Of a stretch of 64,000 nucleotides of DNA, positions 1 through 64,000 are shown in pieces. Positions within the stretch are counted from its first letter, which is position 1, and each line of letters starts with the position of its first letter. The notes under the pieces are model-generated. The model did not search any database. It was not told where the DNA came from and saw nothing but the letters and a program-made list of their open reading frames with translations. The stretch lies in the NCBI GenBank assembly GCA_002269645.1, contig NIVC01000634.1, forward strand, positions 1-64,000, given 5' to 3'. The translations under genes were made by a program, and so were the position numbers. Source of the DNA: Macrostomum lignano (Eukaryota).

Positions 1-1138
1 GCCTTGACTTGCATAAGCCACACTGCCTATCTTTTGACTTAATTAGCAATTTCTAGATGTTTTTATGGGTTTGTCCAAATTGGTAAGCCACCTTTCAAAT
101 ATGAAATAGATATCATAGCTTCAATTTTGCCTATAGCCCACCATTGCTTAGCATCTATCATCTGCCAAACCATTTTTAAATATGAGAGTAAATGATGTGT
201 GCATATAAAAACTGAGTTAGAGCTTTAACTTGCCTATCACTCCTGTCATTCATGTATAGTTCATATTCATACTTAAATCAACTGATTATATATTGTATGC
301 CCCTGTGGTATAGAGAGTAAATTGCACAAATTGCAAATAAGATCTAAGAGAAATTGCTGAACACAAAGGATAGTGACTTTTCAATGTTGCTAAGTATAAG
401 TTGTGGGACAGCACCTTTACCATATCCATTTTTCAGGGTAAAATTTCAAAATTTAGAGTTATATAATGTACATGTACACTCTACACACAAAAAACCCAGG
501 GTCTCATTCTTAAGGGTTTGTTTTCCTAATCTCAAGGGTTATTCCTATGTTCTTACTTACTACTTAAATGATTTCCATAGAAGTAGACACTAGCCCTGAG
601 GCTGAGTATCAATTTTGTCTTTGACTCTAAAAAGAATAGCTAGAGATAAAAACTCAAATGGTCAATAGAAGAAATAAGTATAAAAAGAAAAGTGAGTTTA
701 TTTAACTTAGCTTGTAGTTGGCTCCTATTTATACAAAAGTATAAAATATATTTAATGTTTATACAATATAACAGTAGTACAATTTTTAAAAATGCAAATT
801 TCTAAGAAAACAAGAAAATAGAATCAAAGCCTATTACATATAATATATATAACATACCATATGCTTGTCTTTTAGGCTATGTTATGTTATAAGGCATATA
901 GTGTTATTTTGTCTATTGTCTTTTTGACACAACTTGAAAATAGACATAATGACTTTGAAAACAAAAAGCAATCTGTGACTTACTTTTTGACAAAAGTGCA
1001 ACTTATCTATGAAAAAAGTGGTAAAGAAACTGGTAGCAAAAAACAGCAAGCAATTTGCAATATTCTATTATTATTATTAAATTACTTATATCAAATTCTA
1101 AAATGCATGAGATTATAGATATTTTTATTACATACATG

Positions 1139-1290
1139 CGCAACTTCGGGAATCACCCAGCCGTTTCTATTGGCAACACACATGTAAGTCGCTATTGGCT
1201 GAGAGCAGTCACGTGACTACTTTTCTGTCCAATAGCGACTTACATGTGTGTGTTGCCAATAGAAACGGCCGAGTGAATCCCAAGGTTGCG
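1139..1290. promoter_or_regulatory. 152-bp palindromic (hairpin) element upstream of domino; promoter cassette or MITE
   Basis: Arms 1139-1198 and 1229-1290 are near-perfect reverse complements (gccgtttctattggcaacacacatgtaagtcgctattgg / ccaatagcgacttacatgtgtgtgttgccaatagaaacggc). A perfect 12-bp palindrome AGTCACGTGACT (E-box core) lies at 1207-1218, and four CCAAT/ATTGG boxes are placed symmetrically. It sits about 410 bp upstream of the ATG at 1699. Confidence 0.75.
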
Positions 1291-1698
1291 CCTAAGCATG
1301 ATAGATAACGACTTAATAAGATAGAGATATACTAAAAGTAAATTTTCTAATTGAAATTGAAAACAGAATTTGCTACTTTCCAAAATCTAATTTTAGAAAA
1401 AAATTGTATAACCAAGGTTGGTTGTTTACTGTCAAAATTGACTGCTCAAGAAAAACCAGATACATGCATATTACATATATAGCATAATGTATTAATCATG
1501 GCTTTATTACTTGAAATCCAATGGCAATGCTAGAGAATTTCGTAAAAAAATATTCTGTCGAGCAGCAGCAGTTCACTGGCGCAGCAATTGGCCAACAATC
1601 AGCGGTGGCGCTTGCTTATCTGACGGCGCCAACCGTCTCTCCCTCGTCTCTTGGAAAATTAATCCTCTAAGTCGTTTGTCGGGGCGCAGTTCGGTGCG

Positions 1699-4600
1699 AT
1701 GTCAGCGGCGCCACCTCCATCTAGCGGCAGTGGCGGCGCGAAGCCTAAGCGATCGTCAATTGGTGCCGCCGCCTCGCCAGCGCCTGTGGATGCCAAACGG
1801 GCTCGGCTGGCTGCGCCTGTTGCGCCCAGTTTAGTGGAGTTGCGCCGGGCCTACCACGATCACGTAGCCGAGCTCAGCTACCTTCAGGCTGGCAACAATC
1901 TATTAGACTATCTGCTGTGGCGTCAGTCCTGCCCAAAATCTCTCTTAGCCGCTTTGAAAGCCGAAGCGCTCGACGAAGACGATCGAAGATGGATTGGCGA
2001 GATGGAGAAGTCCGGGCGGTGCGCGAATTGTTTCCTCGGTAAAAATTTTTTGCTTCTTTATCGACATGCTATGAGGGGTCTCAATGAGTCAGTCTTTTTA
2101 GGTTTCGGGTTTTTAGAAATTTGATGATAGATTTTTTGAACTGCATTTCCAACAGAAAGCATACCGAAACTGTAAAGAAACACGATGGGAAATTATGTAT
2201 ATAAGTATGCCATCAGCCAGTTTCACGGCAGCTCCTAAAACCCCGGTTCCATTTCACCAGGCCAGCCACGGTGCCGCAGGAATGCGAGCAGGCGGCGACA
2301 ACAGGCAATCCTATTGTGAACTACCTGCAGCTGCCGAGGCGCAGCTCGCCGCCTTCTCAACAGCAGCGTCAGCTGAGGCGAACTTCGTCTCAGCAGTCCA
2401 GCCAGGCCTCTCCGCAGCCGTCTCTGGCGTCCCAGACTTCTTCATCTCCGACAAAACAGGAAAAAGAAGCAGAAATTGTTGACCAGGCGAAGCACGAGGC
2501 TCAGGTGATGCAGAAGGTGGCCGAGCTCAAAGCGGCCGGTCTTTGGTCCAGCAAGCGGCTGCCGAAATGCCTGGAGCCGCCCAGGCCCAAGTCGCACTGG
2601 GACTATTTGCTAGAAGAGATGCAATGGCTGGCCACGGATTTTATGCAAGAGAGAAAGTTTCGTCGCGTCTTTTCTCGCAAGGTAAGCATTAGGTTGAGAT
2701 ACTTTGATAAATATGAACTTTACTGCTTTCATTCTCGTGATTGACAAATCATTCCCAGATGTGCCTGATGGTTCAGCGACATTTCCGCGAAAAAGAGGAC
2801 AGAGAGCGGCGCCAGGAGAAGGAAGAATTTCATAATTTAAAGCGCATCGCCTCTCAGTGCGCCAGGATGGTGCGCGAGTGGTGGCTGGGAATTCAAAAGG
2901 TGAGGCAGCTCTGCGGCTAAAATGGTATACTCATACTCAAGTGAACTCATCGCGAGCTGCCGATTTATTGCGCGAACAGATTATTTCCTTAAAATCTGGA
3001 CCGTTAAGCAGCTCGCTACATTAGCACTTATTCTTTTTCACTGACACAGAAATTCGCTCTACCCGATGCGTCTGTGTTATAAATTAGAATTACATTGCTT
3101 CTATCGGCGCAAACTGTTTTAATAATGCCTATTTTTAACGAGAGAGATTGAATTAATCGCCAAACTTGGCTACCCGCAGTTCGTGGAGTTCAAGCACAGC
3201 AACAGGCTAGAGGAGAAGCGACGAAAAGCTCTCGACCTGCATTTAAACTTCATCGTTGACCAGACTGAAAAGTACTCGGAGTGGCTTGTCGAAGGCCTCA
3301 ACGCCGGTGGCGCCAGCAGTAGTGGAGGCGCCGGGTCCGTCGCCGGCAGAGATGACGAAGAATTCGTGCCGGCCGCATCGGATCTGGACGCCGACATGGA
3401 TGACGAGGAGACCATAGCCAAGGCCGAGGCTGAGGACTTGGCCGATACACAGGATGGCGACGACGAAATTGCCGCCCTGCAACGCGACATGGACCAGCCA
3501 ATGGAAGAGCTTCTGCGCAGCCTGCCGCCTGAGATTCTAGAGAAGCCGGCCAGTCTTCCGGGCTCGGAGGCTGGCACTGATGATGATAAAGACAAAGGCG
3601 ACACCGGCGACGAAGACAGCGAGTTTCGCATGGACTCCGACGACGCCGAGGCCGAGGATGTCGAAGATACAATCGCCGAAGAGGAGGCGGCTGTGGGCGG
3701 CAGCGGCGATGCCGGCGTCGAGGTCGACCAGCTGGCGGAGGAGGCCGAGCTGCCGCTTGAAGAGCTACTGAAACGCTATCGCGGCGCGTTCGAAGGAGGC
3801 CACAGCGAAGCCGACGAGGCGGCGTCTGTGGCAGAAAAAAGCGGCGGCGAAGACGGTACCGCCTCCGGCAAGTCTGGCGACGCCTCGGACAACACAGACG
3901 ACGAAGCCTCTGCAGGCGCCAAATCGGCCATTGCTGAGCTGGCCGAGATGGATGCCACTTCCGATACCGGCGACGCCAATGGCGAGGACGTCGAGGCGCA
4001 AAGGCGATGTCGGGAGAAGCTGGATGAAGGCTATCGGGAGCTGGCGGCTGAGGCGCTGTCCGCGCTGCCGAAGGGATTCACACTGAACTCCACTAAGATT
4101 AGCGTGCCTATTCCGCACCTGCTGCGCGGTGGCAGCCTTCGCGAGTACCAGATTGTTGGCCTCGATTGGCTGGCCACACTCTACGATAAGCGGCTTAATG
4201 GCATTCTTGCTGACGAAATGGGTCTTGGCAAAACCATCCAGACCATCGCCCTGCTGGCGCATCTGGCCTGCGACCGCGGTGTCTGGGGGCCGCATCTCAT
4301 TGTTGTGCCAACGAGCGTCATGCTCAACTGGGAGATGGAGTTCAAGAAGTGGTGCCCCGGCTTTAAGATTCTTACCTATTTCGGCTCTCTAAAAGAGCGC
4401 AAGGAGAAGCGCAAAGGCTGGACAAAGACGAACGCATTCCACGTGTGCATCACCTCTTACAAGTTAGCCATTCAGGATTCCCGCTGCTTCAAGCTCAAGA
4501 AATGGAAGTACCTGATTCTTGACGAGGCGCAGAACATCAAGAACTTCAAGTCGCAGCGCTGGCAGACGCTTCTGACATTCAACAGTCAGAGGCGCCTTCT

Positions 4601-7600
4601 ATTAACTGGAACGCCGTTGCAAAACTCCCTCATGGAGCTGTGGTCGCTAATGCATTTTCTAATGCCTCAAGTCTTTCAGTCTCACAGAGAGTTTCGCGAA
4701 TGGTTTGCCAACCCCCTCACCGGCATGGTGGAGGGCACACAGGAGTACAGCGACCAGCTGGTACGGCGACTTCACAAGGTGAGATAATTGGCTTGCTTGC
4801 ACTTTTTTCTAGCTAAGTATTACTGATCTGAAAACTATATAGGGTTATCATTTTACTTTCAAAACAGGTGTTGAGGCCTTTCCTTCTTCGGCGTTTGAAA
4901 AAGGACGTCGAGAAGCAGATGCCAAAGAAATACGAACACGTCGTCATGTGCCGACTGTCCAAGCGTCAGCGGTACCTCTACGACGACTTCATGTCGCGTG
5001 CGTCAACCAAGGAGACTCTGGCTAGCGGCCATTTCATGAGCGTCATCAATGTGCTAATGCAGCTGCGCAAGGTGTGCAACCACCCCAATCTGTTCGAGGA
5101 GCGGCCCACTGTGTCGCCGCTGCGTGTTGACCCAATTCGCATTGACGTGCCCGGCGATGTTCTCCGACTGCGAGACTACGATCCTATGCGCCAAGTTCTG
5201 CTGGAGACTCTGTGGCCAAACATGTGCGAGATGGAGCGCGACCTGCCCAGCTTCGTTGCCAGCCGGGTGGAACAGCTTCGACCGAAGCGTCCGCTAATTC
5301 AAGAGCTCGCAGACGATGCCGCACAGGATGCCGCAATTGGCAGTTCAAACGGCTCCTTCCCGGAGTCTGTGTTTAATTTTCGCGGCTTACCAGTGTCTCG
5401 CAAACCGTTTATCTCGCGAGCCACCCTCAAGGAGTCTAAGCTGGAATTGGCAAAGACAGCAGCACTGCCACCAGGTTTGTAAAGAAGTCAATTTTGCAAC
5501 AATCCTTATTGGTTTTCTTCCTTTTTACTTAATAAAAATGATCATCATCCACTTTAAATAAAGAATATTTCACAAACAAATATTTATATAGATTAGACAT
5601 TTATTATCGGTGGATAAGAATCCGTACTTTGCAAAAATCGCATATTATGTTTTTATTATAAAACCCGGCCTCCGAGGCTCCGACAGTCTCGATCCCGAAC
5701 AGATTCCTTCCTTAGGGTTGCTTTCATAAGACCGAAATTTCATAAAGCCGAGAGACACCTGCCTACCTACACAAGACCGAAATTTCACAATGCCGAAACC
5801 ACTGCATGGTCCTTCATAATCATAAGACCTAAATTTCACATCGTATAGAAAACTCAATATGCAAACCCTTCACAAGACCGAAACTTCATATGTCTGAACT
5901 TTTACATCATAGAAAAATTAATACAACAAGGACCATGCAGAATTTTCGGCGTTGTGAAATTTCGGTCTTTTGAAGGGCCTTGCATATTGAGTTTTCTACA
6001 GTGTGAAATGAGATGTTTCGGCGTTGTGAAATGTCGGTCTTATGAGGCTCCCCCCTTCCTTAGCCCATGCATTCATTAAGCAAATACACAGTCACGAACC
6101 CCTTTGTCGTGTCTGCCTCTTGTATCTTCTTTGCTTCTTTGCTTTTGACTTGAGGGGTCCCCGCGGCGCATTAAATGACTGTCTCTCCTCCCCACTGAGT
6201 GCACAACTTGTATGTACGCAAAAACACGCTGGGCCGGGGTTTGACTTCAAAAATCGATATTCCTTCTAGAATTTTCTACGCACCACCCACCCTCCCGTAC
6301 CCTATTCCAGCCCTGTGCTACTTGCCTTCTCATTGGCTGACACGCCTCTGTCACGCCCCTCTGGCGTGCACACCGCACAACCCCCCATGGTCCCTAGGTC
6401 TTGCCCTATATGAAATCACCGACTCGAAGCCCCACTGGCCCCTTCCCCTTTGCTTATCACACGAATACAGTGGGATTGTTCCAACTTCCAAATCCAAAGC
6501 ATTTATTTCATGCCGTATAGTTTGACTACTGACTGAAGCAGATTTCAGCGCTGAATAAAGACTTTGTCTTCTCAAGTTTTCTCCTTCTCAAATGAATACC
6601 TGAATAAAAATGGTTAAACGAAATTTCTGTCATCGACATCAATCCATGGCGCCAGTGGTAAGTGAAGTCCAACCACTTTTCGTGTTAAATTCCAATCTAG
6701 AAGCACAATTCGAATCTAGACCGAAATTGAAAGAAATATTGACTGCTACAGTTTACCCAGTATAAATTTTAAGACCTCCGTGCAGTCACACCCTTGTTAC
6801 TGAACAATTAAGTTATTGTTCTCAGTAATCGTTCTGTCGCGATTTGGCCGCACTCTGGTGTTTAGCAGTCAAAGATGATCCGGCTAAAAGTGAGAAACGT
6901 CTCTAGCAGATTTTACGAGTCGTTTTCGAACATTTAGCGACAGTTTTTCACACTAACGTTTTCTATGCTTAACATGACATGATTACTTGTTTCTCTTGGC
7001 TGACTAAGCTATATGCTATGCAGATTCCGAGATTTTATGATATTTTAATAGCATCCAGGAACAAACCATTTGATCTTGTTCTCTACTAAAGGTTTCCTCC
7101 CTCTCTCCTACTTCATTTGAAGGATCTCGGCCCCAGCCTGAGAAGGTTGACACCAGGCATCTATGCAAGAAGCTCGCCAGCAAGTATGCAATTGGTATGT
7201 AGACTTTTTCTTTTTTCTTATCAATTTTATTATAAAGCAAAACTAGAAACTTGGCCGTTTTCATTCGTGTGATTCCGACAATACGCGTATTCTCGGCATC
7301 GAATACGACAAATAGCAGCCAGTTATTTTACTGACTGTCTTTAATTAAACTGGCCTAACAGCAGCTGCTTTCATTATTTACGTGCTGTCGCCATTTTAAC
7401 CCGACTGTGCTGGCGGTGACAGCCCCGAGTAATGACACAATTATTGCAAATCCACCATCAGCAATAAATCTTTCTCATTGCTTTTGCCGCTCTTTCCGTT
7501 CTTCTCAACAGAAGCTCCCGTCGATCCCGACGCCCAGCTGCCAGACGGCATCCGGCAGATTCGGCAGCAGGCGCGCCACGATCGAGTCAGCTTGCTGGAC

Positions 7601-10600
7601 CGACTCAGCGATCGCCGATGCCAGTTCCAGCCGGTGTACGGCTGCGACCTGCTCGCCGCCGTCTCCATTTTCCGGCACCCGACAGAGCCGCACTCGGTGC
7701 TGCCCAGCTGGCGACGCGGCTGCTTGTGGACCAGCAGCACTCAGCGGACTCAGCCTCGTGCGCAGTCCTACTGTCTGATGCGCGGCCACCTCCACTGCCT
7801 TAAATCTCAGCTGAGAAAGTCCGATCCTCGCCTGCTGTTTGCCTCCACCAGCGGCCTGGAATGCCTCGTTAATCGGCCCGAGGATCGGCTGGTTGAGCTT
7901 CGCGATGTTATTGACAGGTGCGATTCTTCTATCCCTATTGTAATGTGAAATCCGAACTTGATTTCATTTTGAAATGATTATAAAATCCTGCAATTCAGAT
8001 ATTTAGCTGATGTCAAACCAAGACGATCTTAGCATGATCCCTGCTCTTGTCCACCTAAGATAGTAGGCCTTTGATTAATCAATTTCTAGTGATTTCTTTC
8101 ACCACTGCCTCATTGCAGATTTTGCTTCGCGGTGCCTCCCGTGCTGGCCGGCGAGCCGTTTCTCTCCTGCCCTTGGCAGCAGCGCCAAGTCGCTGTCGAG
8201 CGCGAATCTGCAATCCGCAGCCAGAGCAGCCGGTGCGACCTGTTGCACCCGATCGCCAGTCGCCAAGCGGTGCAGTTCCCAGACGGCCGGCTGATTCAGT
8301 ACGACTGCGGCAAGCTGCAGAGTCTGGATCTGCTGCTGAAACGACTAAAGCCCAAGGGCCACCGGGTGCTCATTTTCACCCAGATGGCGCGCATGCTGGA
8401 CATCCTAGAGCAGTTCCTGTCGCATCACGGCCACATCTACCTGCGGCTTGACGGCACAACTCGAGTTGAGCAGCGCCAGATTCTCATGGAAAGATTCAAT
8501 GCTGATAGCCGGATTTTTGTGTTCATTCTGAGCACTCGGTCTGGCGGCCTGGGCGTCAACCTCACCGGCGCCGATACTGTGGTGTTCTACGACTCGGACT
8601 GGAACCCCACCATGGATGCGCAGGCTCAGGATCGCTGCCATCGCATCGGCCAGACTAGGGATGTTCACATTTACAGGTGAGCAGGCCTAATGTCCTGTAA
8701 TAATGTAGCCTATTTCATTCATTGCCGTCTCCCGCTTCCGAGACTTCTACCAATTAACTCAGTTGGAATTCATCGGCTGAAAAGTGACGGCTAACATTAC
8801 ATATTAATTGTAGCAGAGTAAATTTTCCTATTCTTGCTCCATTTCTGTAATAATTCCAGGCAAGAATAGGCAGATGGCTTTGCAACAGTTGCTTTAAAAA
8901 CTATTTTAGTGTCAACAGTTCTGTGCTCTGTGTATCTTCTAAGCTAAACATAATAAACATTGCACATTACTATTTTATCCAGGCTGATCAGCGAGAAAAC
9001 AGTCGAAGAGAACATTCTGAAGAAAGCCAACCAGAAACGCTGGCTAAACGATGTCGCCATTGAGGGAGGCAACTTCACCGCCGCTTTCTTTCAACAGAAC
9101 ACCATCAAGGAGCTGTTTTCTGAACCGACTGGCCTGGATGACTTGGTTGCCAAGAAGAAGACGCGCCTGGCTGCTGCTGAGCAGGAGCAGCAGGCGGAAG
9201 CTGAGAGTCGGCCGGGTATCGAAACGGTAATTTATTAAAGTTCATCGCTTGTACTATTTATTAATTCTATTTGTTATGCGTGCATTTAGTTTTTATAAGG
9301 ATTAAAAACAAAACAGGTGAGCTTCCTAATAAAAGGGGCGAATCAAATGATCATTGATCGATAGGAATGAATAAGCTTTCTTGAACCTATAATCAGACTT
9401 GACATTTTAAATCAACTGCGATTTGCTTCTGACCGATCCGCACGAATCCCCGCTTAACCCACAGGCCCTCGAAGAGGTGGAAGACGAATCCGATCGGCAA
9501 GCAGCCGAGAAGGCCAAGAAAGAGACTGTCGAAGAGCTGGCCGAATTTGATGAAGACATTCCCTGGGATGAGAACGAAGCCCTGCTTCGGCAGCGCGAGC
9601 ATCGACTGGAGCGCAGGCTGGCCGCGTTAGAAAGCGAGGTTTGCTTTGCCTTAATGCGATTTTTGTGCTTTTATTCATTTCATTTGCTAAATAATGATAA
9701 ATCCAGGGGAGTTCAGAGTCACGGTTCTGAACCAATAACTCGTGTCTTTGCCGTGCTTAAGAATTCCGAGATTAAACTTCCATTCAGTGTGCGCTTTGAC
9801 CAAATGCTTGCAACTGCTGCTATTGCTTAATGTTCGAGTGTTGGAGGCCGTGACTGAAACAGTAAAATCAATTAGTTCGACAGGGCATTCATGATGAAGC
9901 TTATCGCTTGGCCAGTCTGCAACAAATTGCGCTGAAGTGGTGCTGCAATGCGCGCTGCTTAAAGCGGCGGGACCCCGCATTGATTTTTGGGCAGACTATG
10001 CTATTCAACTAAGCGGCTTATTAGCTGCGGTCTGATCTAGCCCTCTTGTACTGTAGCTTCCGTCTCAGTGTAATTAGAAATATTTTTATATTACTGCATA
10101 TTGCAGTCCTTTTATTATTAAAACTCCCCTCCTTTGCCAATTGCCAGCTGTCTTCTCTGGAGCGCTACGGCTTGAGCTTCATCGAATCCCATCAGGAGCT
10201 GATGATGAACTGGGAGCTTGAGCAGGCCGAGGTCAACATCGAGCAGTCCAAGCGCGAGTGGGAGCTGCAGCAGCTCAAGCAGCTTCGGCAGGAAGAGGAG
10301 CTGCGCGCCGAGCTGGAAGAAGACGACATGTTCATGTGCTACGGGGCCTACGACCCCGCCAGACAGGTACGGGAGCTTGCGCGCCAGATGGAGATCGAAG
10401 ATGCGGATCATGACTTAAGGGTTGGAGGGGAGGAAGCTGCGGTTTCGAACGCGTCGCCGGACCGCGGACGGACAGCGGACCGACTGGTGTCCAGTCTGGG
10501 AATTCGCCAGGTGCAGCTGGCTGACGATTCCACGGGTGCTGGCGTTGGTGCAGATGCGAACTCCACGCTAGCAGCGCGGCGACGAGCGAAAAAGATAAAG

Positions 10601-11260
10601 CGCCAACGGCGGGTGGCTGCCGAGACTGCGGCGCAGCAGAACCAATTGGCTTCTCCACTTCAGCAGGAGCAGCAGCGCCAGCAACTGTTCACTGAGGAGA
10701 GTCTGGTGATTGTCGATAATGAGACCAGCGAATCTGGGCCTCCAGTCCAGCTGCCAACGCTGCTCATGCGACAGCAGAAGCGCAAGGCTGATCCAACTGA
10801 GCGAAGCTTTCGGCTTTTCCCGCCAGCTGCTGCGCCGCCCATGACTCACGCCCCGCCGACAATCTCGCAGCCCCTACATTCATCGCATACCACAGCAACA
10901 CCAGCTTCATCTGCCGGCGTCACATTGCTGCAACCCCAATCTTCTGCTCGGCCGGTGACCCTCGTAACTCGCCAGATTGTTATTCCAAATGGCCAGGTCA
11001 TCCACCAGCAGTTTATCCAGCCGCGGTACCTGCAGCAGCAGTCTCACCAGGGCCAGGCTATACGACTGGTACCGGTTTCCCAGTCGCCATCTCAAACTCA
11101 AAATCTGGTGTTAATGCCGCAGTCTAAGCAGCAACAGCCGCAGCAGCAGCTAATCACACTGCATCGCTCTGTGCCGCAGCAAACTGTCCGCCTTGTCCCA
11201 GCTGCCCCCTCATCAGCCGCAGCTTCTCCCGGCTCTTTGGGATTTCAGAATCCGCGTTAA
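1699..11260 (+). CDS. dom: Domino/SRCAP/EP400-family SWR1-type chromatin-remodelling ATPase, short (DOM-B/SRCAP-like) isoform, ~1860 aa
   Basis: Phase-consistent GT-AG exons: 1699-2018, 2261-2681, 2759-2899, 3180-4778, 4868-5474, 7512-7917, 8119-8676, 8983-9226, 9465-9638, 10148-11260 (5583 nt). Motifs: N-terminal HVAELSYLQAGNNLLDYLLW block, HSA (KSHWDYLLEEMQWLATDF), Walker A GILADEMGLGKT, DEAQ box, split ATPase insertion, and HelicC (QAQDRCHRIGQTRDVHIYRL). The last exon reads through into a Q/P-rich tail ending at TAA 11258-11260; AATAAA is at 11775-11780. Confidence 0.95.
5720..6047. mobile_element. Foldback/MITE-like inverted-repeat element in domino intron 5
   Basis: The motif AAGACCGAAATTTCA occurs several times on + (about 5728, 5773, 5826, 5875) and as its reverse complement (about 5955-5969, 6028-6042). 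gaaaactcaatatgcaaacccttc (5849) is mirrored by gaagggccttgcatattgagttttc (5972). Confidence 0.65.
6045..6660 (+). mobile_element. Possible LTR remnant with PBS-like sequence
   Basis: In order: ATTGG box, TATA-like TATATGAA (6407), AATAAA (6554, 6603), then ...CA followed immediately by TGGCGCCAG (6647-6655). No second LTR and no gag/pol ORF were found. Confidence 0.2.
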
Positions 11261-12742
11261 TGTTTTATTTGGGCTGGGAATCCTTGGATAAATTAATTCA
11301 CTTAGTTGTATTGCATAATAAGTTTTATCACAGCGCTAATTTTGTTATTGCTTTATGGCATTAATTATCCAGAGTATCATATATACCAAAATATTAATAG
11401 CTTAGTACTGCTGATAATGGATCAAAAATTCAAAATTGCACCATAATTGTAGCGCTTTAGTGAAACAAAGGCCCGGCCAGCAAACTCGCAAACTAGGCAT
11501 GTGTTTATTTATAAATCATGCAACTTTGTAAACAAAACAGATTTCCCTGCTAAATTTACACGGAGCTGTCTGGCATTTCCTTAGTGAGGCGGCTAATTAA
11601 TTTACTGCAAGGACAACAAATGTGTGCAATGCGTGCACGGTTTTCATTCCTGATGTAGGCTAAGATTGCGTGTCCCCATTGCACAGTTTCTATTGCTTAA
11701 AAGTGATCAATCTGTCAATTCTCTGTGGACTTGTACATGCTTTCAATTTAACTGTTTGCCGTTGGAAAGTGCAAAATAAAAATGCGTATTGCATAAGTTA
11801 TTTTTCATGAAAAACCAGCCTGTGGCGGTGCAGTGGCCCGCTATGAACCGCGAGAAAATCAAAATGGCTTATTGGTTTATTCGTTTCAATCGTCTTTCTC
11901 CTACACAAGAAAGTAAAAGTGATTAATTAATGCCCGTGTGGATCGAAATTGTCGAGGGGCAATTATAATTTCATCGAAAAGCTATTCAAATTAAGCGGCC
12001 ACTTTCAGTTCCCGTTTTCCGAGCGCACAGACCGTAATAATACCTTGGTTATAATAGCGAGCCGCACGTCTTTCAAAATACGTCTAGAACCCAATATTAA
12101 AAAATACTAAATTCCCCATTCGCTTAGTTAATGCCTACTCGAAGTACTAAAGAAATGACTGTATTTGAAAGACGTTTGAATCGTTATAACCAATACAAAA
12201 ATGGACTTCGTAGCTAGCAAAATAATAGTTCGGCCAAATGATTTTGTGTTTGGCCAACGCTATTTTGCTTGCTGCTGTCTGCCAGAATTCTCGCTGCGCT
12301 TCGTGGCTGACACTGAATTGGTTCGCTGCAACAAGAAATGTCGACAATTGAAGTAGCGTGTGTACATGTAGCTCAAAATGATAATTAGCCTTGCACGGAA
12401 ATGAAACTTGGACTGGAAAGTATACTCCGAGCGTGTGAATTAATTTGTAGTCCATGAGCACAAAGTTTTAGAATTAAAAACGTTGGCATTAGGTGGTGAT
12501 GCATGAAAATATGCGCATCTTAGCTTGTAGGGCTGTATTTTTGTTTAGATAAAATTTTATTTGCAGCGACCCGCGCCAAAGGCGGTTGGTAATTTTAGAA
12601 ATTACAAAGTACATTCCGGCGGCAGAGCAGCTGCACCTATGAGTATATACTGAGTACAGATGTATTTCGCAGTTGTACTAATTAATACAGTGGAAAGTCT
12701 TCCTAAAGAATTCATTCCCTTCCAACTTTTAATTGCTTCTAG

Positions 12743-12778
12743 GTCTTCATCTTTAAGGATACTGGCGAGCTGCTTCCG
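12743..12778 (+). CDS. dom: 36-nt microexon (VFIFKDTGELLP) of the long Domino isoform
   Basis: Strong acceptor (ttttaattgcttctAG) and perfect donor (GTAAGT), phase 0-0. It joins ...YDPARQ (donor 10367) to IWHPLEL (acceptor 16022), restoring the spacing of the EP400/DOM-A block that precedes the WxP..D.Y.D motif. Confidence 0.75.
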
Positions 12779-13551
12779 GTAAGTGATAATTTTGTTTAAT
12801 TAAGCTCTTGTTTTGTGTTTCCATTTGTCCAATGTGTGTCCCCTGTCCGACTTAGAGTTCGCTATTTCCAAGTTCATTGCAGCCAAACGACTTAATTTAA
12901 TTTTAAGTCGAATGATTTAATTTCAACATGGCTCAAAACTAGAGGCCAAATGCCAAATGGCACCATATTTAAAAAAATAAAAAATCTTTTGATAAGCTCG
13001 TGCTACACCTCCGTCTCAGTGGTTTTTACTCTGTTTCTGAATTGCGATTTTGCGTTAGAATAAAGCGCCGATCACTATAACTAGCTTAGAAGTGTCTTTT
13101 ACATTCTAATTCTAATGCACTTAGCTATCTCCAAGATAGAAATCATCTTAGCTCAACTTACGAAGTGGCTCCCAGTCGCAGCGCATAGACGATTGGCTTG
13201 GTGTTGGGAATTCAATAATAAATATAAAACAGCGGCCGAGCCTTGGCGAGAGAGAATCTGCACTCTGCCTTGCTCATCCCCACTGGGACTTGCCAGCCAT
13301 AGACATCTCTTTGTACAGTTGGCTCGAAAGGCAACTCGGGCCCATTCCGCTGCTCAGCCCAGAGGGGAAGGCTTTTTCGGCTTACGGCTTTGCATTAGAG
13401 CCGCTCGCATTTTGACCTTAACAAAAGACAACCCGAGGCCCAAGGTGCAGTTAGAGGCAACGAGAAGCGTCCACGAGCCACATCTAGCTAAGCTTGCGTC
13501 GGATTTGGTCAACCACAGCTGCAGCACCTATATACCTAAGCAGACTGAACT

Positions 13552-15055
13552 ATGCGCGAGATTGTGCACATGCAGGCTGGCCAGTGTGGCAATCAAATTG
13601 GAGCAAAGGTAAGCCTTATTTATTCTCCATTATTTTAACACCATGGTCGCGTTTTAGTGAGATCGGACTCCCAATTTCCCTTACTGTGTCCTCCTTGGTC
13701 TTTTTAGTTTTGGGAGGTGATCTCAGATGAGCATGGCATCGACCCCACTGGCACCTACCATGGCGATTCGGACCTGCAACTCGAGCGAATATCGGTTTAT
13801 TACAACGAAGCTACCGGCGGCAAATACGTGCCGAGAGCTGTGCTCATCGACCTGGAGCCCGGCACCATGGAGAGCGTTCGGGCCAGCTCCTTTGGCATGC
13901 TGTTCCAGCCCGACAATCTGGTCTTTGGCAAGAGCGGCGCCGGCAACAACTGGGCCAAGGGCTACTACACAGAGGGCGCCGAGATCATCGACAAAGTCAT
14001 GGATGTTATCCGCAAAGAGTGCGAAGGCTGCGACTGCCTGCAGGGCTTCCAGCTGACCCACTCGCTTGGCGGCGGCACCGGCAGCGGCATGGGATCTCTG
14101 CTGCTGAGCAAAATTCGCGAGGAATATCCAGACAGAATAATCACCTCCTTCTCTGTGGTTCCTTCGCCAAAGGTAAGCTGAGCTGTTTTTTCTAAACCAA
14201 GTTTGTGCTTTGCCTCTAACCACGCCACCGAATCTATTCCAGGTGTCGGACACGGTGGTTGAGCCCTACAACTGCATGCTGTCTCTGCACCAGCTGGTTG
14301 AGAACACCGACGAAACCTTCTGCATCGACAACGAGGCCCTGTATTACATCAGCTTCCACACCTTGAAGCTGGCCACCCCCAGCTACAGCGATCTGAACCA
14401 TCTGGTCAGCGCGGCCATGTCCGGCGTCACCACCTGTGTCCGCTTTCCCGGCCAGCTGAATGCTGACCTGCGCAAGCTGGCAGTGAACATGGTGCCGTTT
14501 CCTCGCCTGCACTTCTTCATGCCCGGCTTCGCCCCGCTGACCGCTCGCGGCAGCAGTTCCTACAGGCAGGTGAATGTCTCCGAGCTCACCCTGCAGATGT
14601 TCGACGCCAAGAACATGATGGCCGCCTGCGACCCCAAGCACGGCCGCTACCTCACTGTGGCTGCCATCTTCCGCGGCCGAATGTCCACCAAAGAGGTCGA
14701 CGAGCAGATGCTCAACCTGCAGAACAAGAACAGCTCGTACTTTGTTGAATGGATACCCAACAATGTGAAGACCGCAGTGTGCGACATCCCGCCCAGAGGA
14801 CTCAAGATGTCGGTGACCTTCATCGGCAACTCCACCTCAATCCAGGAGCTGTTCAAGCGAGTCTCCGAGCAGTTCAGCGCCATGTTTAAGCGGAAAGCAT
14901 TCTTGCACTGGTACACCAACGAAGGCATGGACGATCACGAGTTCATGGAGGCCGAGTCCAACGTCAACGATCTGGTGTCCGAGCTGCAGCAGTACCAGGA
15001 CGCCACCGCCGACGACGAGGGCGAGTACGAAGAAGAAGAAGAGGAGTTGGAATGA
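13552..15055 (+). CDS. tubb: Beta-tubulin, divergent isotype, 444 aa, nested in a domino intron
   Basis: Exons 13552-13608, 13708-14172, 14243-15055 (1335 nt). Contains the MREI start, GGGTGSG signature, NNWAKG, CDIPPRG and an acidic C-terminal tail [12 protein letters not shown]. Confidence 0.98.
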
Positions 15056-16021
15056 CACTGACGGCCACCGAGCCCCCCTGCCCCCTACTGCAGTCCCCTG
15101 TGCCTCGCTGCACTTTTTTTTGCGTTCTCCTACTCGTAACCTCTTTACCAAAGCGCATTGCTGGCCTGGATCAGTGCCCAACGGCCAAGCAGTCTTCACA
15201 CCGACAATCGGAGATACCGCACTGCCCGAACCTCCCCCACCTCTGATGCGCAGCATATCGCTTCAATCTGTCCCTCTCGCATTGTTTATCGCGTCACAAT
15301 GTCCTGGCAACCACAATTCCCTATTTAGTGTCATTGCGCTATTTATTTACCTTGGCATAACCCGTACAGTTACCTGCTTGTACGGACGGATTTTGTAGGG
15401 CTCAAATTGGTTTTAAACACGCAAAACACACGTCACATTTCTGTACACCAGCGCAGCCGACAGCGAGCGGTTGAACACAGGTGGACAACTGCACTCGGCA
15501 TCCACTTAGCATTTTAGTTTACCTTGACTCATTATTTATTACTGTTGTACAGTCGTACTCGAATACATATAACGCTTGATTTTAGTGTCAGCTATGCACT
15601 GCATATTTCTGTCTTTGACTTCTGTTTTGTCTTTATCGATGCAACGGGAAAAACAGCATGAAAAATTCTCACAAACCCGGGTCTGCTAAATCAGCTAGAA
15701 AAGAATATGTTAAAGCTCATCACGAATGATAAAGCTTGGAAAAATTGCTGCTCCCAGCTTCTTCCTCTTCGGCGAGAATTTTTCAAACAGTTACGCTTGA
15801 TCTCCAGTTGTGCTGGTTGCAAAGAAAACGCGGTTTTTTCATTCCTCTTCCACCGTTGCAGTTTCGCAAGAGTTAGTGGTTATTTCTTTTCTTGTGAACT
15901 GCTCCATCTGGTGTCTGTTTTACTCCCAGGCTCCTCAGATGCGGCTTGTGCATGTGGGGGGGGGGCTCACCCGCGATTCTTACTCTGTTTATTCCGCCCA
16001 TTGCTAACCGTCTCCGAGCAG

Positions 16022-18999
16022 ATCTGGCACCCGCTCGAGCTGAAGGAGAATGACCACTACGTGGACCCCGTCGCCAGCCAGCTGTACTGCTTGGACCAGC
16101 CGTTGCGGGACGATGAAATGCCCCCGCTGTGGCGCCGCGCGAGCGAAGCGGGACGGCCGCTGGCGGCGGCTTCCGACTGCAGGAGCCACCGCCCGGTTGG
16201 CGACGGCGCGGCGGCGTGACCAAAGCCTCTGTGCGCGGCGCTGGCGGGAGTCGGTCCGCTCGAGCCGCCGCTGCTGCTGCCGCCGCAGCCAGCGGATCAG
16301 GCGGCGTCCTGCAACCGCTGCGCCTGAAAGACGAACTTCCGCCAACCCTGGCAGCCGCCGCGGAATCCGCCGGCTCCAGCAGTCACTACAGGCACCCTAG
16401 CGGCAAACTGCAGATTCCCAAATCTCTGTTCCACCGGGATAGCCTGTCCCTGTCCTACGCCAAGCCGAAGCGGCCGCTGGTGCAGCGCCCAGGCGTTGGC
16501 GGCGTTGTCGGCCCAGGCGGCGTTGGTGGCCTGGGCGTCGGTCCGGGGCATCAGCAGATGCTGGCCAGGCCCGGGTACAGCAACTATGACAACCCGAGCG
16601 GCACCGACTTCGATCTGCAGCCAAAGTGGAGCGCTCACGAGCAGCTGGGCATCATCCAGAGCATCGAGCGCTTCCAGGAGATGTACCTGGAGACGGCCCT
16701 GTCCTATGAGCCGCGGTTCACCACCCAGATTCCAAACTGGGATTTGGCCGAGTACTACGTCAACAATTTCGTTCGATCCCGCTGCTACCGCGGCAAGTTT
16801 CACATTCACGCCCACATCGACCAACTGGCCAGCAAGGTCATGGACGATGGCACGGCGGCTGCCGCAGCTGCCGCCGCCGCTTCCGGATCGGGCAACGATG
16901 CCGCCTCATCGCAGCAGCTCCCAGCCTCTGCCGACGGTTCAACCAGCTCTTCTTCCACAGCTGCCGGAGGCGCGCAGGCCGCGGCGGCCGCTGCTGTGGC
17001 CGCAGCAAAGAAGGCCGCCCGCTGCCGCCTGAAGCGGGGAATCCTGCGGTCCCGGCTGAGCGCAGGCGAATCGGCGACCCAGCTGAACTACTCAGTGGAC
17101 GCCAAGGGCCAGGCCATGCGTAGCCTCCTACGCTGCGGCCTGAGCACCGGCTCCGGTGGCGGCGGCGGCGGTCACAGCCGCAAAGGCGGCCCCGCCATCG
17201 GACTGAACCGGCCGCGACCGACTTCCACGGGCTCCTCCGCCTCATCCGGCGTGACGCTATTCAAGAACACCCAGCACCTGCAGCTGCTGCAGGAAGAGGG
17301 CATCAAGCTGGACACCATCGTGAGTCCCGCGCACATCATCCGCCTGGCTGAGGAGCGGCGCAAAACCCAGCCGGTCTCTACTGCCATCACCGCTGACGTT
17401 GGCGAGCAACAGCAGCAGCAGCCACAGCAGCAGCAGCAGCAGCAGCATTCTCTGCATCAACAGCAGCTGCAGAAACTGCGAATGTCCAATCAGGGCGGCC
17501 TGACGTCAATCGGGCCGGGAGGCTCGCAGTCGCATGTGAGTTGGGGATCATTATAAGAGTGCAGATAATCACGCCAGCTCTTAGGCTGCTAAACAATCTA
17601 TAGTTAAAGCATTGGGGGTTTATTTAGCTGGCATTTGCCTCCAGCTGCAGGTGTCCACCTCGGCCGGGGCGGCCGCCAAGTCCAGCATCCTGGTGCCCGG
17701 CACCGCCAGCTCCGTCCTCGGCTTCCAGCGCAGCGGCGGCGGGCCTTTCCGGGCCGCTAGTGCGGCCGCTGCTGCCGCCGCTGCAGCAGCCTCAACGACA
17801 TCCGGCGGGAAGCCGCCGACGGCTCCGGCCAGGATTCTCACCTCTGGCTTCGGCGGCCCCTCGAGCTCGTCCAGCAGCGGCGCCAGCAGCGGCAGCACGC
17901 TGCTCCGCCCGCCACCGCAGCCAATGCCGCTGCCGCAGTCCCAGGCAACTCTGCCCGTGTCGCTGCAGGCGCCTCAGCAGCCGATTTCAATCACTTCAAC
18001 GCAGCACCAGCCTGCTGGCCTGGCCGCGGCCACCGGCATCGGCCTTGGCGGGCTGCGGCGTCCCGGCGGCGCCTACGCATTTCCAGCCTCGGCTGGCGGA
18101 GTCGGCCGGCTGAACCCGAACCAGCCTGCCGCCTTCGTGCGCACCCTGGGTGAGTTCAGGGGACCGTCGGGATTTTAAATTGCTGCATCTTAGCTGTGGG
18201 CTGTCGGTAGCTCCAACCCGTTGAAAAACTAAAAAGTGGTTGCTAACAACTCTCAAGTGACTCAAGCGACTCTGTTGTGACTCTGGTGACTTTTTAACGA
18301 CTCAAACGCGTCTAGTGCGACGGAGAGGCGGCTGTTGCGTCACAAGCGCATCACGTGAATTTTAGGATCGTAAAAGAGTCCTCAGTGACTCAACAGCTAC
18401 TCCAGCACGCCTCAGATACGACGTTTTACCGTCGCGTCAGAGTCACTTGCGTCGCCCCATTGTCTTTCATTATCATGTCACAATCGACCCCATCCCGCTC
18501 CCGGCCAGGTCCGCGGTCCAGCATTCTCGGAGCTGCCGGCGGAGCGACCTCGGTCCCGACCACCCTGGTCACCACCTTGCCGCGGGCCCGCCTGCAGGGC
18601 CCTTCGGCAGCCGCCGCCGCAGGGTCAGCGCAGCAGCAGCCGTCGGGTTCCGCCGGTGTCGCTCCCGCCAGCCTGTACAGCGGCGGCGGTGGCGGCGGCG
18701 GCCGTCACGTGATCCTGCAGGGCACCACCACCGTCACGGTTCGCCAGATTCCCGATTTGAGGTCGGCCGACTCGGCCAGCCAGCAGCCAATCATCATCTC
18801 GGCCGCCAAGCCGACCCCGGCCGCCAGCATCAGCCTCATCCCGCCCGGTTCCGCCGCCGCTCACGCCGCCGCTGCCGCCGCCTCAGCCGCCTCCTCAGCC
18901 GCCAGCGTCTATCCGTCATTCACTGTCTCGGCCAGCGCGCATTCCTCGGTGGCGACTCTGCCGCCAGTGGATTTGGACAGCATTGACGATGGCAACTAG
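16022..18999 (+). CDS. dom: Alternative 3' exons of domino encoding a p400/DOM-A-like C-terminus (SANT domain plus Q/A-rich tail); long isoform ~2410 aa
   Basis: Exons 16022-17535, 17651 (or 17645)-18149 and 18509-18999. IWHP..DHYVDP..LY...PPLW resembles the EP400 LWTPP..DIYLD block. PKWSAHEQLGIIQSIERF...PNWDLAEYYVN...YRG resembles the EP400 SANT domain (W...ED..LLQ...PNWDLVSDVVN...YRS). One base is needed at 16130-16132 to keep the frame. Confidence 0.85.
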
Positions 19000-19006
19000 C
19001 GAAAAG

Positions 19007-19170
19007 GAATGCCGTCCCTGTCTCTTCCCCTGACCTTCGATGGGATGCCGTCCCTGTCTCTTCCCCTGACCTTCGATGGGATGCCGTCCCTGTCTCTTCC
19101 CCTGACCTTCGATGGGATGCCGCCACCACCTCTCCCCTGACCTTCGATGGCATGCCGCCACCACCTCTCC
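19007..19170. repeat. 36-bp minisatellite, ~4.5 copies, in the domino long-isoform 3' UTR
   Basis: Unit gatgccgtccctgtctcttcccctgaccttcgatgg starts 8 nt after the stop codon. Confidence 0.9.
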
Positions 19171-19886: not shown

Positions 19887-20220
19887 TGCCCTAGCAACCA
19901 TGGACTTCTCTAGCTTCCCAAACAATCAAATGCCCATCCAGCAACCAGGGCAAGCTTCCCTTAGCAAACAAACTCTTCTAGCTTCTCTAGCAACCAGATG
20001 CCCCTCTAGCTTCCCTAGCAACCAGATGTCCCTCTAGCTTCCCAAGCAAACAGATGCCCCTCTAGCTTCCCTAGCAACCAAATGTCCCTCTAGCTTCCCT
20101 AGCAACCAGATGCCCCTCTAGCTTCCCTAGTAACCAGGCTACCCTCTCTAGCTTCCCTAGCAACCAGATGCCCCTCTAGCTTCCCTAGTAACCAGGCGCC
20201 CCTCTCTAGCTTCCCTAGCA
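19887..20220. repeat. ~28-30-bp minisatellite
   Basis: Unit ctctagcttccctagcaaccagatgccc, about 10 degenerate copies. Confidence 0.9.
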
Positions 20221-21104: not shown

Positions 21105-43461
<22,357 letters not shown>

Positions 43462-46423: not shown

Positions 46424-51779
<5,356 letters not shown>

Positions 51780-52782
51780 TGGCCAGATCCGCTGCGGCTC
51801 CGCCAGCGCTGCCAGCCGGCCCGGTCAGTTTTGTGCCGCTCAGCTCCGCGGCTTCTCCCGCCTCCCCTCCCCGCCTTCCCCGCCTTCCCCGCCTGTGCGC
51901 TCCGTGGATGAGGGGATCGGACAGGGAGTTGGGGATCGGACAGGGAGTTGGGGAATCAGGCACGGGAGTGTACAGGCGGGTTGAGGTTGTTATTTGGGAG
52001 GAGAGATGAAGGAGGCTGCGGTAGCAGCAGCCAGTACAGTTTTCCGCTGTCTGCCTGCCTGTCTGAATCCCCTTTCCCAAATCCACCCTGCGCAGCGCAC
52101 GGCCCAGCCCGGCGCACAAGTCTGTCATCGGGCGCGAAAGCAACTCCAGCACTACTAGATAGTAGAAATGCACGCTAATTAAGCCTTTTTATAAATGTCT
52201 GAGCAGCATTCAGACAAGAACTGCTCAAGTGGAAGGACGGGAGACTGCGAGCCGTACGTTTCTTAGAAAACGTTTATGAGGCTGGTTTTTTCCGAAGACT
52301 ACACTATAGAGATAGGAATTTTTCATTTTTTCAGCACAAAAATTTGTTTTTGCTTTCGATAGTAGGCAGACCCAATGCTCCTCTTTTGATATGTTGTGCC
52401 TCTCTTATAGCTCTATTGATATTTATAAAGCTTTTTGTTCAGAAAATCAGGATTCTGTGTTAATACTTTGTTCCACGCACAACTGCACATGTCCTGTGCC
52501 GAAAAAGCATTAAAATGGCACGGCTCGGCTCATTGGTTTTATGAATCTATTCTGTCATTTTTAGCTCACTGTGTAACAATATGTGTAACAGAGATGATTA
52601 AATAGATTTATTAAACCAAAGATTCGAGCTGTGCCATGCATTTTTATGATTTTTAGGTGCAGGGAATGTCTGTCTTCGCACCTTCTCAAACACGAATCAA
52701 TCATCAATCACTGGGGCATTCGGTGCAGCCCCAGTGCGCCAATCAGCACTGCGCATCAGCACAACGGACCGCATGTGTGTCT

Positions 52783-63800: not shown

Positions 63801-64000
63801 CGGCGAGCAGCAGCACCCAGCAGACGGTGTCAAAAAATCGCCTTCCACCGCGGGGGCCGGAGCGGTGGCGCGCCAGGAATGCTTCTTGTACCGATGGGCG
63901 CTGCATCTGTACGACTTTTACCATATCCCCGCAGTGAAGTTCCGCTACCACGCTACGTCGCACGTAATTATGGTGCTGCTCATGTCATACATCCTGCTCT
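60848..64000 (+). CDS. Ankyrin-repeat TRPM-like cation channel (5' part; continues beyond the window)
   Basis: Exon 60848-61331 (phase-1 donor A|GTAAGT) and exon 62177->64000 (open frame with no stop to the window end). About 6-7 ankyrin repeats (DGKVPLHHA, NNTPLHRA, EGKTALHVA), followed by TRPM-like LVWNRIEVLIEN..LEALY, HPMHTLVIWSILAGR, SCMDLAA...CQIALEKKWYG and YDFYHIPAVKF leading into the start of S1. Confidence 0.85.

Follow-up and report, generated by a model that had tools for sequence, protein, structure and literature searches.

Can a single flatworm gene supply, through alternative 3' ends, the C-termini of both a SRCAP-like and an EP400-like protein? The question is raised by a domino gene in a stretch of 64,000 nucleotides (nt) from Macrostomum lignano (assembly GCA_002269645.1, contig NIVC01000634.1, positions 1 to 64,000, forward strand; hereafter the window), for which a preliminary description had proposed that positions 1699-18999 encode two C-termini through an internal splice donor at 10367. 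In Drosophila, DOM-A and DOM-B arise through alternative 3' ends of domino, one SRCAP-type ATPase gene; the branch lies about 200 amino acids past the helicase C domain, DOM-A has a SANT domain and Q-rich stretches, DOM-B is without a recognisable domain, and the two forms define separate complexes, one of the SWR1 type for H2A.V exchange and one of the NuA4/TIP60 type with acetyltransferase activity (PMC7239659). Our results indicate that the flatworm locus is likely to hold one domino gene whose composite last common exon leads to two C-termini, one reached by read-through (B) and one by splicing (A), both mRNAs being predicted.

The part of the gene common to both paths encodes an HSA domain N-terminal to the ATPase (Pfam, E 1.2e-10 in the open reading frame (ORF) 2205-2741) and a Snf2 ATPase that is split by a long insertion, with the N-lobe ending near 5470 and the C-lobe starting at 8119. 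Searches with phmmer against the chains of the PDB gave the N-lobe 544 bits with SRCAP, 281 with EP400 and 251 with INO80, and the C-lobe 279, 165 and 169 bits, respectively; human SRCAP is the best match of the flatworm ATPase. The N-terminal exon had no Pfam match. Judged by its sequence, the gene is the domino of M. lignano, with a SRCAP-type, HSA-bearing, split Snf2 ATPase.

The phase-0 donor at the end of exon 10 and the open read-through to a stop at 11260 are present as the preliminary description had given them (Table 1). The read-through frame of the B extension contains no in-frame stop, against 9 and 8 in the other two frames, and the chance of an open frame of this length was estimated at 7e-5 to 1e-3. 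A codon-usage score trained on the sure exons of the window gave a frame-specific signal in the A exons as well as the B extension, and was flat in introns, in the untranslated region and in the ORF just upstream of 16022. The extension is predicted to encode a disordered tail that is rich in Q and P and includes a basic patch, RRRAKKIKRQRR; Pfam matched nothing in it.

A second copy of the locus was found in M. lignano, on contig NIVC01001201.1 of the same assembly, 98% identical over window positions 3503-19170 (copy positions 1-15612), and the divergence between the two copies is very uneven. In the B extension there are two changes, one synonymous and one V>I, compared with 1.5-5.5 substitutions per 100 nt in the non-coding DNA adjoining it, and 3' of the B stop the conservation persists to about 12000 and then collapses. 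A conserved island at 12700-12870 surrounds the microexon of the A path (2 mismatches per 100 nt, against 38-47 in the flank on one side and 15-25 on the other), and the one change within the microexon, CTG>TTG, is synonymous. Besides a 1-base deletion at 18603, the indels in the A exons are of 9, 6 and 12 nt; that of 6 nt is the sole indel in the exon 17651-18149, and that of 12 nt lies in frame in the last A exon. The two copies do not diverge at all over the first ~5 kb (3503-8100), and divergence then rises in the 3' direction to 5-9% in non-coding DNA. This unevenness suggests different haplotypes, copies on duplicated chromosomes with local homogenisation, or different assemblies.

The joining of exon 10 to a microexon at 12743, which had been proposed earlier, is supported as a prediction: the microexon is flanked by a proper acceptor and donor, both in phase 0, and it would splice in frame to the acceptor gagcag/ATCTGG at 16022 (here and below a slash marks a splice junction or the point homologous to one). 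Between 10367 and 16021 there are 168 AG..GT segments of 27-63 nt that are in phase 0 and free of stops. The microexon ranked first of these for similarity to the homologous stretch of relatives, and just 3 others of the 4006 such segments in the whole window reached its score. Were the microexon donor left unused, the frame would close after six codons (VSDNFV) at 12779-12799, a possible third and very short ending. For the last A exon, 18385/18386 is the first phase-compatible acceptor; 18406/18407 fits too.

The product predicted for the A path resembles EP400. When the A path, preceded by the C-terminal portion that both paths have in common, was searched with phmmer against the PDB, EP400 aligned unbroken across both junctions, 10366>12743 and 12778>16022, and the alignment to SRCAP ended before the donor. 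Around the second junction, vfifkdtg..ellp/iwhplelk..endhyvdp...mpplw of the window is paired with eyvyedvdgqtevmp/lwtpptppqddsdiyldsv...lppvyvrke of human EP400. The A path is colinear with residues ~2186-2290 of the human protein, including a post-ATPase motif, [IL]W.P...D.Y.D...LY...PP, at ~2210-2290, and with its SANT region and post-SANT motif. Without the ATPase, the match to an EP400 C-terminal construct had an E-value of 3.5e-9, with weak colinear matches over the SANT region and the post-SANT motif. An alignment with the A tails of arthropods showed that they have every conserved motif in common with the A tail of the window. Word-indexed protein searches were also made: the A junction with the SANT stretch found no match in a search that is apparently blind to long proteins, and the C-lobe with the A path found only fragments below 800 amino acids, none of them from M. 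lignano, long proteins apparently being unscored. The p400-like end of the preliminary description is supported by the colinearity with EP400 across both junctions.

The same description had called the exons at 16022-18999 SANT-bearing. In the sequence of the window, no Pfam SANT or Myb domain was matched at E<=1. The stretch KWSAHEQLGIIQSIE...IPNWDLAEYYVNNFVRSRCYRG aligns with the SANT domain of arthropod A tails, and two crustacean homologues exceed the Pfam Myb cut-off at this stretch (25.3 vs 24.4 bits). A profile of nine arthropod tails, compared with the A exon by hhalign, matched over the domain with 94.8% probability and an E-value of 5.5e-8. An AlphaFold (AF2) model of the stretch, with a predicted local distance difference test score (pLDDT) of 61.7, contains the expected helices, and the top five PDB matches that Foldseek gave for the model were all to the chain of EP400 as it occurs in the TRRAP lobe of human TIP60 (E-values from 3.4e-3 to 0.7, template modelling (TM) score 0.39-0.49). 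We accept a divergent SANT domain in the A path as probable because of the arthropod alignment, the crustacean Pfam matches, the profile match and the predicted fold, all of which point to it indirectly. Of the earlier claim, the coordinates of the exons stand and profile and fold speak for the domain, which Pfam did not recognise and which the frame of the window, stopping at 16217, does not reach.

After identifying the two paths in the flatworm, we compared the locus with domino of the crustacean Daphnia pulex (GL732545.1), where the three-part layout is identical. Its donor, AATCAG/GTTAAG, is homologous in codon and phase to CAG/GTACGG of the window; read-through of the phase-0 donor gives a 198-codon ORF followed by AATAAA; a microexon of 36 nt in phase 0/0 (tcacag/AAGTGG...ATGCCA/gtaagt, KWISMDGLEEMP) comes next, and the exon after it, the counterpart of the IW exon of the flatworm, starts with ATTTGGTGC (IWCPPTPP). 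The loci differ in that the Daphnia B tail has the motifs of insect B tails, PRTRSRGTVNINLWTLD, of which the flatworm B tail has none, and in that the Daphnia introns are of about 1.3 kb and 0.2 kb, without a nested gene. In other arthropods, protein predictions derived from contigs begin at /[IM]WCPPTPP. The tail types of other invertebrates, as seen in fragmentary insect, spider and rotifer proteins, part company at exactly the branch residue of the window: B-type proteins (from a mosquito, two hemipterans, a spider and a rotifer; fragmentary) always start with V, that is, GTN, at this residue, and A-type tails at the residue were found in one MetaClust sequence and in Daphnia pulex (again fragmentary proteins). 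The old annotation of the Daphnia contig (locus 409-10134) splits domino into models of 931 and 665 amino acids and follows the A path only; the 198-codon B read-through ORF is unannotated.

The alignment of EP400 across the junctions, the Daphnia layout and the pattern of divergence between the two copies uphold the earlier proposal of one gene with two C-termini, and the following mechanism can be put forward. If the internal donor at 10366/10367, which is weak, were left unused, translation would continue for 297 more codons, and the B mRNA would end probably after the AATAAA at 11775; its product would be the ATPase with a disordered tail that lacks a SANT domain, the counterpart of DOM-B and of SRCAP in SWR1-type H2A.Z exchange. 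If the donor were used, the 36-nt microexon would follow exon 10 and would in turn be spliced, over a 3.2-kb intron with a β-tubulin gene inside it, to the three exons of 16022-18999, which would add an EP400/DOM-A tail with the IW...PP motif, a SANT domain like the one placed on TRRAP in human TIP60, the post-SANT motif and Q-rich stretches. The A product would serve as a scaffold of a NuA4/TIP60-type acetyltransferase complex. Splicing at the internal donor would compete with cleavage and polyadenylation of the read-through transcript, and the outcome would decide between the two forms. Composite terminal exons, in which an internal 5' splice site chooses between read-through and downstream exons, are known, for example, from the secreted and membrane forms of the immunoglobulin M heavy chain, to which the likeness is a mechanistic analogy only. 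We infer that both mRNAs are produced and that the two proteins have the functions named here.

Several observations, the first two of them absent from the preliminary description, weigh against this proposal. In the window itself, the frame entered at 16022 meets a TGA at 16217-16219, before the SANT-like stretch. The A-path intron contains a same-strand gene with its own promoter, and, since the spliced leader of M. lignano ends in ATG and the acceptor at 16022 is in phase 0, a separate in-frame mRNA could be formed from the downstream exons. The Domino protein of the public annotation stops at 1332 amino acids, inside the helicase-C exon, with neither tail called, and no M. lignano protein that includes exon 10, the A tail or the B extension was found in the searched collections. 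The B tail found chance coiled-coil matches only among the PDB chains, SRCAP included, and in comparisons with six B tails and with the read-through of the trematode Echinostoma caproni (see below) all blastp E-values were above 1. Since no similarity of the B tail to another B tail or to a PDB chain could be detected, the term SRCAP-like, used for this end in the preliminary description, fits the SRCAP-type ATPase and the absence of a SANT domain, and does not extend to the sequence of the tail. We infer that the B form may resemble SRCAP in function.

The alternative that survives best, although we consider it unlikely, is that 16022-18999 belongs to a separate mRNA, leader-spliced at 16022 (M-IWHPLE...), either as the downstream gene of an operon shared with β-tubulin or with its own promoter, and that domino makes the B form only. 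The SANT tail would in that case be a protein by itself. In M. lignano, 30% of genes are trans-spliced and 15% are in operons with a spacing below 1 kb, and the leader, as said, ends in ATG; the acceptor at 16022 lies just 966 nt past the tubulin stop, and neither AATAAA nor ATTAAA occurs between the two. The nested gene is complete and has Pfam Tubulin and Tubulin_C domains, and its 444-amino-acid product matches M. lignano PAA70872.1 exactly, so that the probable flatworm of the preliminary description was correct. It is a divergent paralogue whose upstream region is conserved between the two copies of the locus; a paralogue more than 90% identical in protein is encoded at two other loci, beside a gene of the HIT family and outside domino, to which the DNA similarity is 82% and is confined to the span from ATG to stop. 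A separate start at an in-frame ATG near 15707 was rejected, coding signal being absent there. Against a separate mRNA stands the microexon upstream of the tubulin gene, which is conserved as an island, has undergone just a synonymous change, serves no other obvious purpose, and equals the microexon of Daphnia in length and position. EP400 aligns over both junctions, and the GAGCAG before 16022 misfits the trans-acceptor motif of M. lignano, YTNCAG. The HSA part of Eaf1 and EP400 holds the actin/Arp module, and a tail expressed without HSA would miss this part.

A further point in favour of a separate mRNA comes from trematodes, where a protein with a homologous tail has no recognisable ATPase. 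A search of 1.84 billion representative proteins with the A exon gave two matches, none of them from M. lignano, and the one significant relative apart from self was Dicrocoelium dendriticum CAH8524108.1, of 1998 amino acids. The protein, encoded at OX104064.1:46805471-46867573, has the IW motif, the SANT domain and the post-SANT motif in this order, and its gene has a phase-0 intron at DLP/IW and no separate microexon. No Snf2 ATPase could be recognised in the gene model or in the 10 kb upstream of it; a degenerate helicase lobe in the protein was considered and found unsupported (E 2.8, no PDB match). In the SRCAP-type gene of Echinostoma caproni (UZAN01043303.1), which is well conserved, the sequence ...YDPQAQ LAELERL... 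reads through the branch codon, CAA/TTG, where there is no GT. Homologues of window exons 9-10 that the annotation lacks lie at 31191-31800 of that contig, past the annotated end of the gene, and the frame runs on for about 160 codons through the branch codon. These observations, which compare different species and gene models that are perhaps incomplete, would fit a division of the two functions between two trematode genes.

Less probable still is that the A tail is a decaying relic: a C would truly have been lost, the A frame would end at 16217, and the B form alone, perhaps with a short truncated A form, would be functional here. The sequence of the window does contain a frame break, and no annotation lies over the tail. 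The break is caused by a run of C5 at 16121-16125, beyond which a different frame (ORF 16117-17553) carries the SANT-like stretch. In the second copy the run is C6, and from cag/ATCTGG to CAT/gtgagt this copy holds a single uninterrupted ORF of 502 codons with all the motifs. About 880 codons of the tail stay open with frame-specific codon usage, the tail has diverged as little as the ATPase exons, and its indels are multiples of three. Wherever the copies differ by a single base, the difference falls within a short homopolymer, and NIVC01001201.1 in turn misses four bases, at window positions 8511, 8996, 9519 and 18603, which break well-conserved exons; this pattern is the signature of long-read assembly errors. 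The public model that ends at 1332 amino acids appears to have missed both tails because of such assembly indels. Introns of the GT-AG type at 16196-16413 or 16216-16400, considered as a repair of the A frame, were dropped as the main explanation in view of the C6 and the continuous ORF of the second copy.

Slightly less credible still is a constitutive donor at 10367 with a chance-open intron behind it, which would leave only the EP400-like A form: the B tail has no detectable homologue and the GC-rich region lengthens chance ORFs, yet so long an open frame is improbable by chance where the other frames have 8-9 stops, its coding signal is frame-specific, its divergence is 0.22 per 100 nt against 1.5-5.5 alongside, read-through tails at the same residue occur in Daphnia, hemipterans, mosquito, spider and rotifer, the Echinostoma orthologue passes the same point without a GT, and the animal would be left without a SWR1/SRCAP-type enzyme unless another gene supplied one.

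Table 1. Features of the domino locus and the adjoining DNA of the window, with divergence from the second copy (substitutions per 100 nt)
Feature	Positions	Strand	Details	Divergence
Common part, domino/SRCAP-type gene	1699..10366	+	start ATG 1699; boundaries upstream of 7900 approximate	
HSA exons	~2261-2681, 2759-2899	+	Pfam HSA	
ATPase N-lobe exons	3180-4778, 4868-~5470	+	Pfam SNF2-rel_dom	
Insertion-region exon	~7500-7917	+		
Helicase-C exon	8119-8676	+	splice sites read from sequence	
Following exons, the last being exon 10	8983-9226, 9465-9638, 10148-10366	+	splice sites read from sequence	
Branch point, internal 5' splice site	10366..10367	+	CAG/GTACGG, phase 0, non-consensus C at +4	
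B extension (donor read-through)	10367..11260	+	297 codons and TAA at 11258-11260	0.22
Likely 3' untranslated region of B mRNA	11261..11800	+	AATAAA at 11775	
DNA between B region and microexon	11801-12742			5.5
A-path microexon	12743..12778	+	36 nt, 12 codons, VFIFKDTGELLP; ttctag/.../gtaagt; phase 0/0	
DNA between microexon and tubulin ATG	12779-13551			3.5
β-tubulin gene, complete, in A-path intron 12779-16021	13552..15055	+	ATG 13552, stop 15053-15055; TATA-like box ~13529	0.27
β-tubulin exons	13552-13608, 13708-14172, 14243-15055	+		
A exons, range of values				0-0.36
Large A-specific exon	16022..17535	+	acceptor cag/ATC, donor CAT/gtgagt; IWHPLE...MPP motif, PKSLFHRD	
SANT-like domain, in large A exon	~16620-16860	+		
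Post-SANT motif, in large A exon	~17230-17340	+		
Poly-Q run, in large A exon	~17400-17450	+		
A-specific exon	17651..18149	+	ctgcag/GTG ... CTGG/gtgagt; ends phase 1; Ala/Ser/Pro-rich	
Last A-specific exon	18386..18999	+	acceptor cctcag/TG at 18385/18386; TAG at 18997-18999	
DNA after the A stop	after 19000			8.8

In the rest of the window, many minisatellites with periods of 17-63 nt were observed, at 19009-19157, 19977-20220, 22052-22257, 22977-24501, 25045-25313 and 25507-26178; additional ones lie around 34-35.2 kb, 48 kb, 50.5 kb and 56.8-58 kb. The 30-nt array at 22977-24501 comprises 51 copies, and a 36-nt array directly after the A stop has many more copies in NIVC01001201.1. Inspection by eye of the ORF translations, and nothing beyond it, points to further probable genes at 26300-36000 (+), 48669-51824 (-), 53845-56295 (+) and 62086-63999 (+); in this order, they are likely to encode a large extracellular REJ/PKD-like protein, an equilibrative nucleoside transporter-like product, an IQ-motif protein and an ankyrin/TRP-like protein, the gene for the last extending past the end of the window. 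Rfam, run on the whole window, matched nothing.

Compared with the known systems, the flatworm locus shares with Drosophila domino one SRCAP-type ATPase gene with two C-termini, the isoforms here being predicted, and differs in belonging to the Platyhelminthes and in having a β-tubulin gene in the A-path intron. In vertebrates, SRCAP and EP400 are separate genes and EP400 has its own diverged ATPase, whereas in the flatworm one SRCAP-type ATPase would serve both tails. In yeast, the B form would be comparable to Swr1 in function and the HSA and SANT of the A form to Eaf1 (PMC7239659), but there the two genes are unrelated and Eaf1 is without an ATPase. Scacchetti et al. (2020) regarded the splice variants of the fly and the two genes of mammals as different evolutionary routes, and noted isoforms with differing C-termini in bees, a wasp, an ant, a beetle and a spider, suggesting that this mode is widespread in Arthropoda, beyond which they did not trace it (PMC7239659). 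In the literature, of which our coverage is incomplete, we found no switch of the DOM-A/DOM-B type outside arthropods and nothing on EP400 or SRCAP in M. lignano, and the supplements of three M. lignano papers contain no EP400 or SRCAP entry. A switch of a kind already known in arthropods is here placed, as a prediction, in a new phylum, the Platyhelminthes.

The preliminary description had left a choice between ancestry in protostomes or bilaterians and repeated evolution. Shared protostome ancestry is favoured over repeated origin because the donor codon, the intron phases and the 36-nt length of the microexon coincide between a crustacean and a flatworm. From these sequence comparisons we put the chances at about even that the DOM-A/DOM-B switch is ancestral to protostomes, and possibly to bilaterians, being neither an arthropod invention nor a convergence, and that vertebrates, and perhaps trematodes, later resolved the switch through gene duplication with a division of labour. 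Given the layout shared by flatworm and crustacean, vertebrate SRCAP and EP400 look like subfunctionalised duplicates of an alternatively spliced ancestor.

If this is true, one ancestral gene would have supplied the scaffolds of both SWR1-type and NuA4/TIP60-type complexes, and the switch would be no younger than the last common ancestor that Spiralia share with Ecdysozoa. In M. lignano, the predicted A path must splice over a whole β-tubulin gene on the same strand. This animal is tractable for transgenesis and rich in stem cells, so that isoform-specific knock-down could test whether H2A.Z exchange and H4 acetylation are divided between the forms outside the insects.

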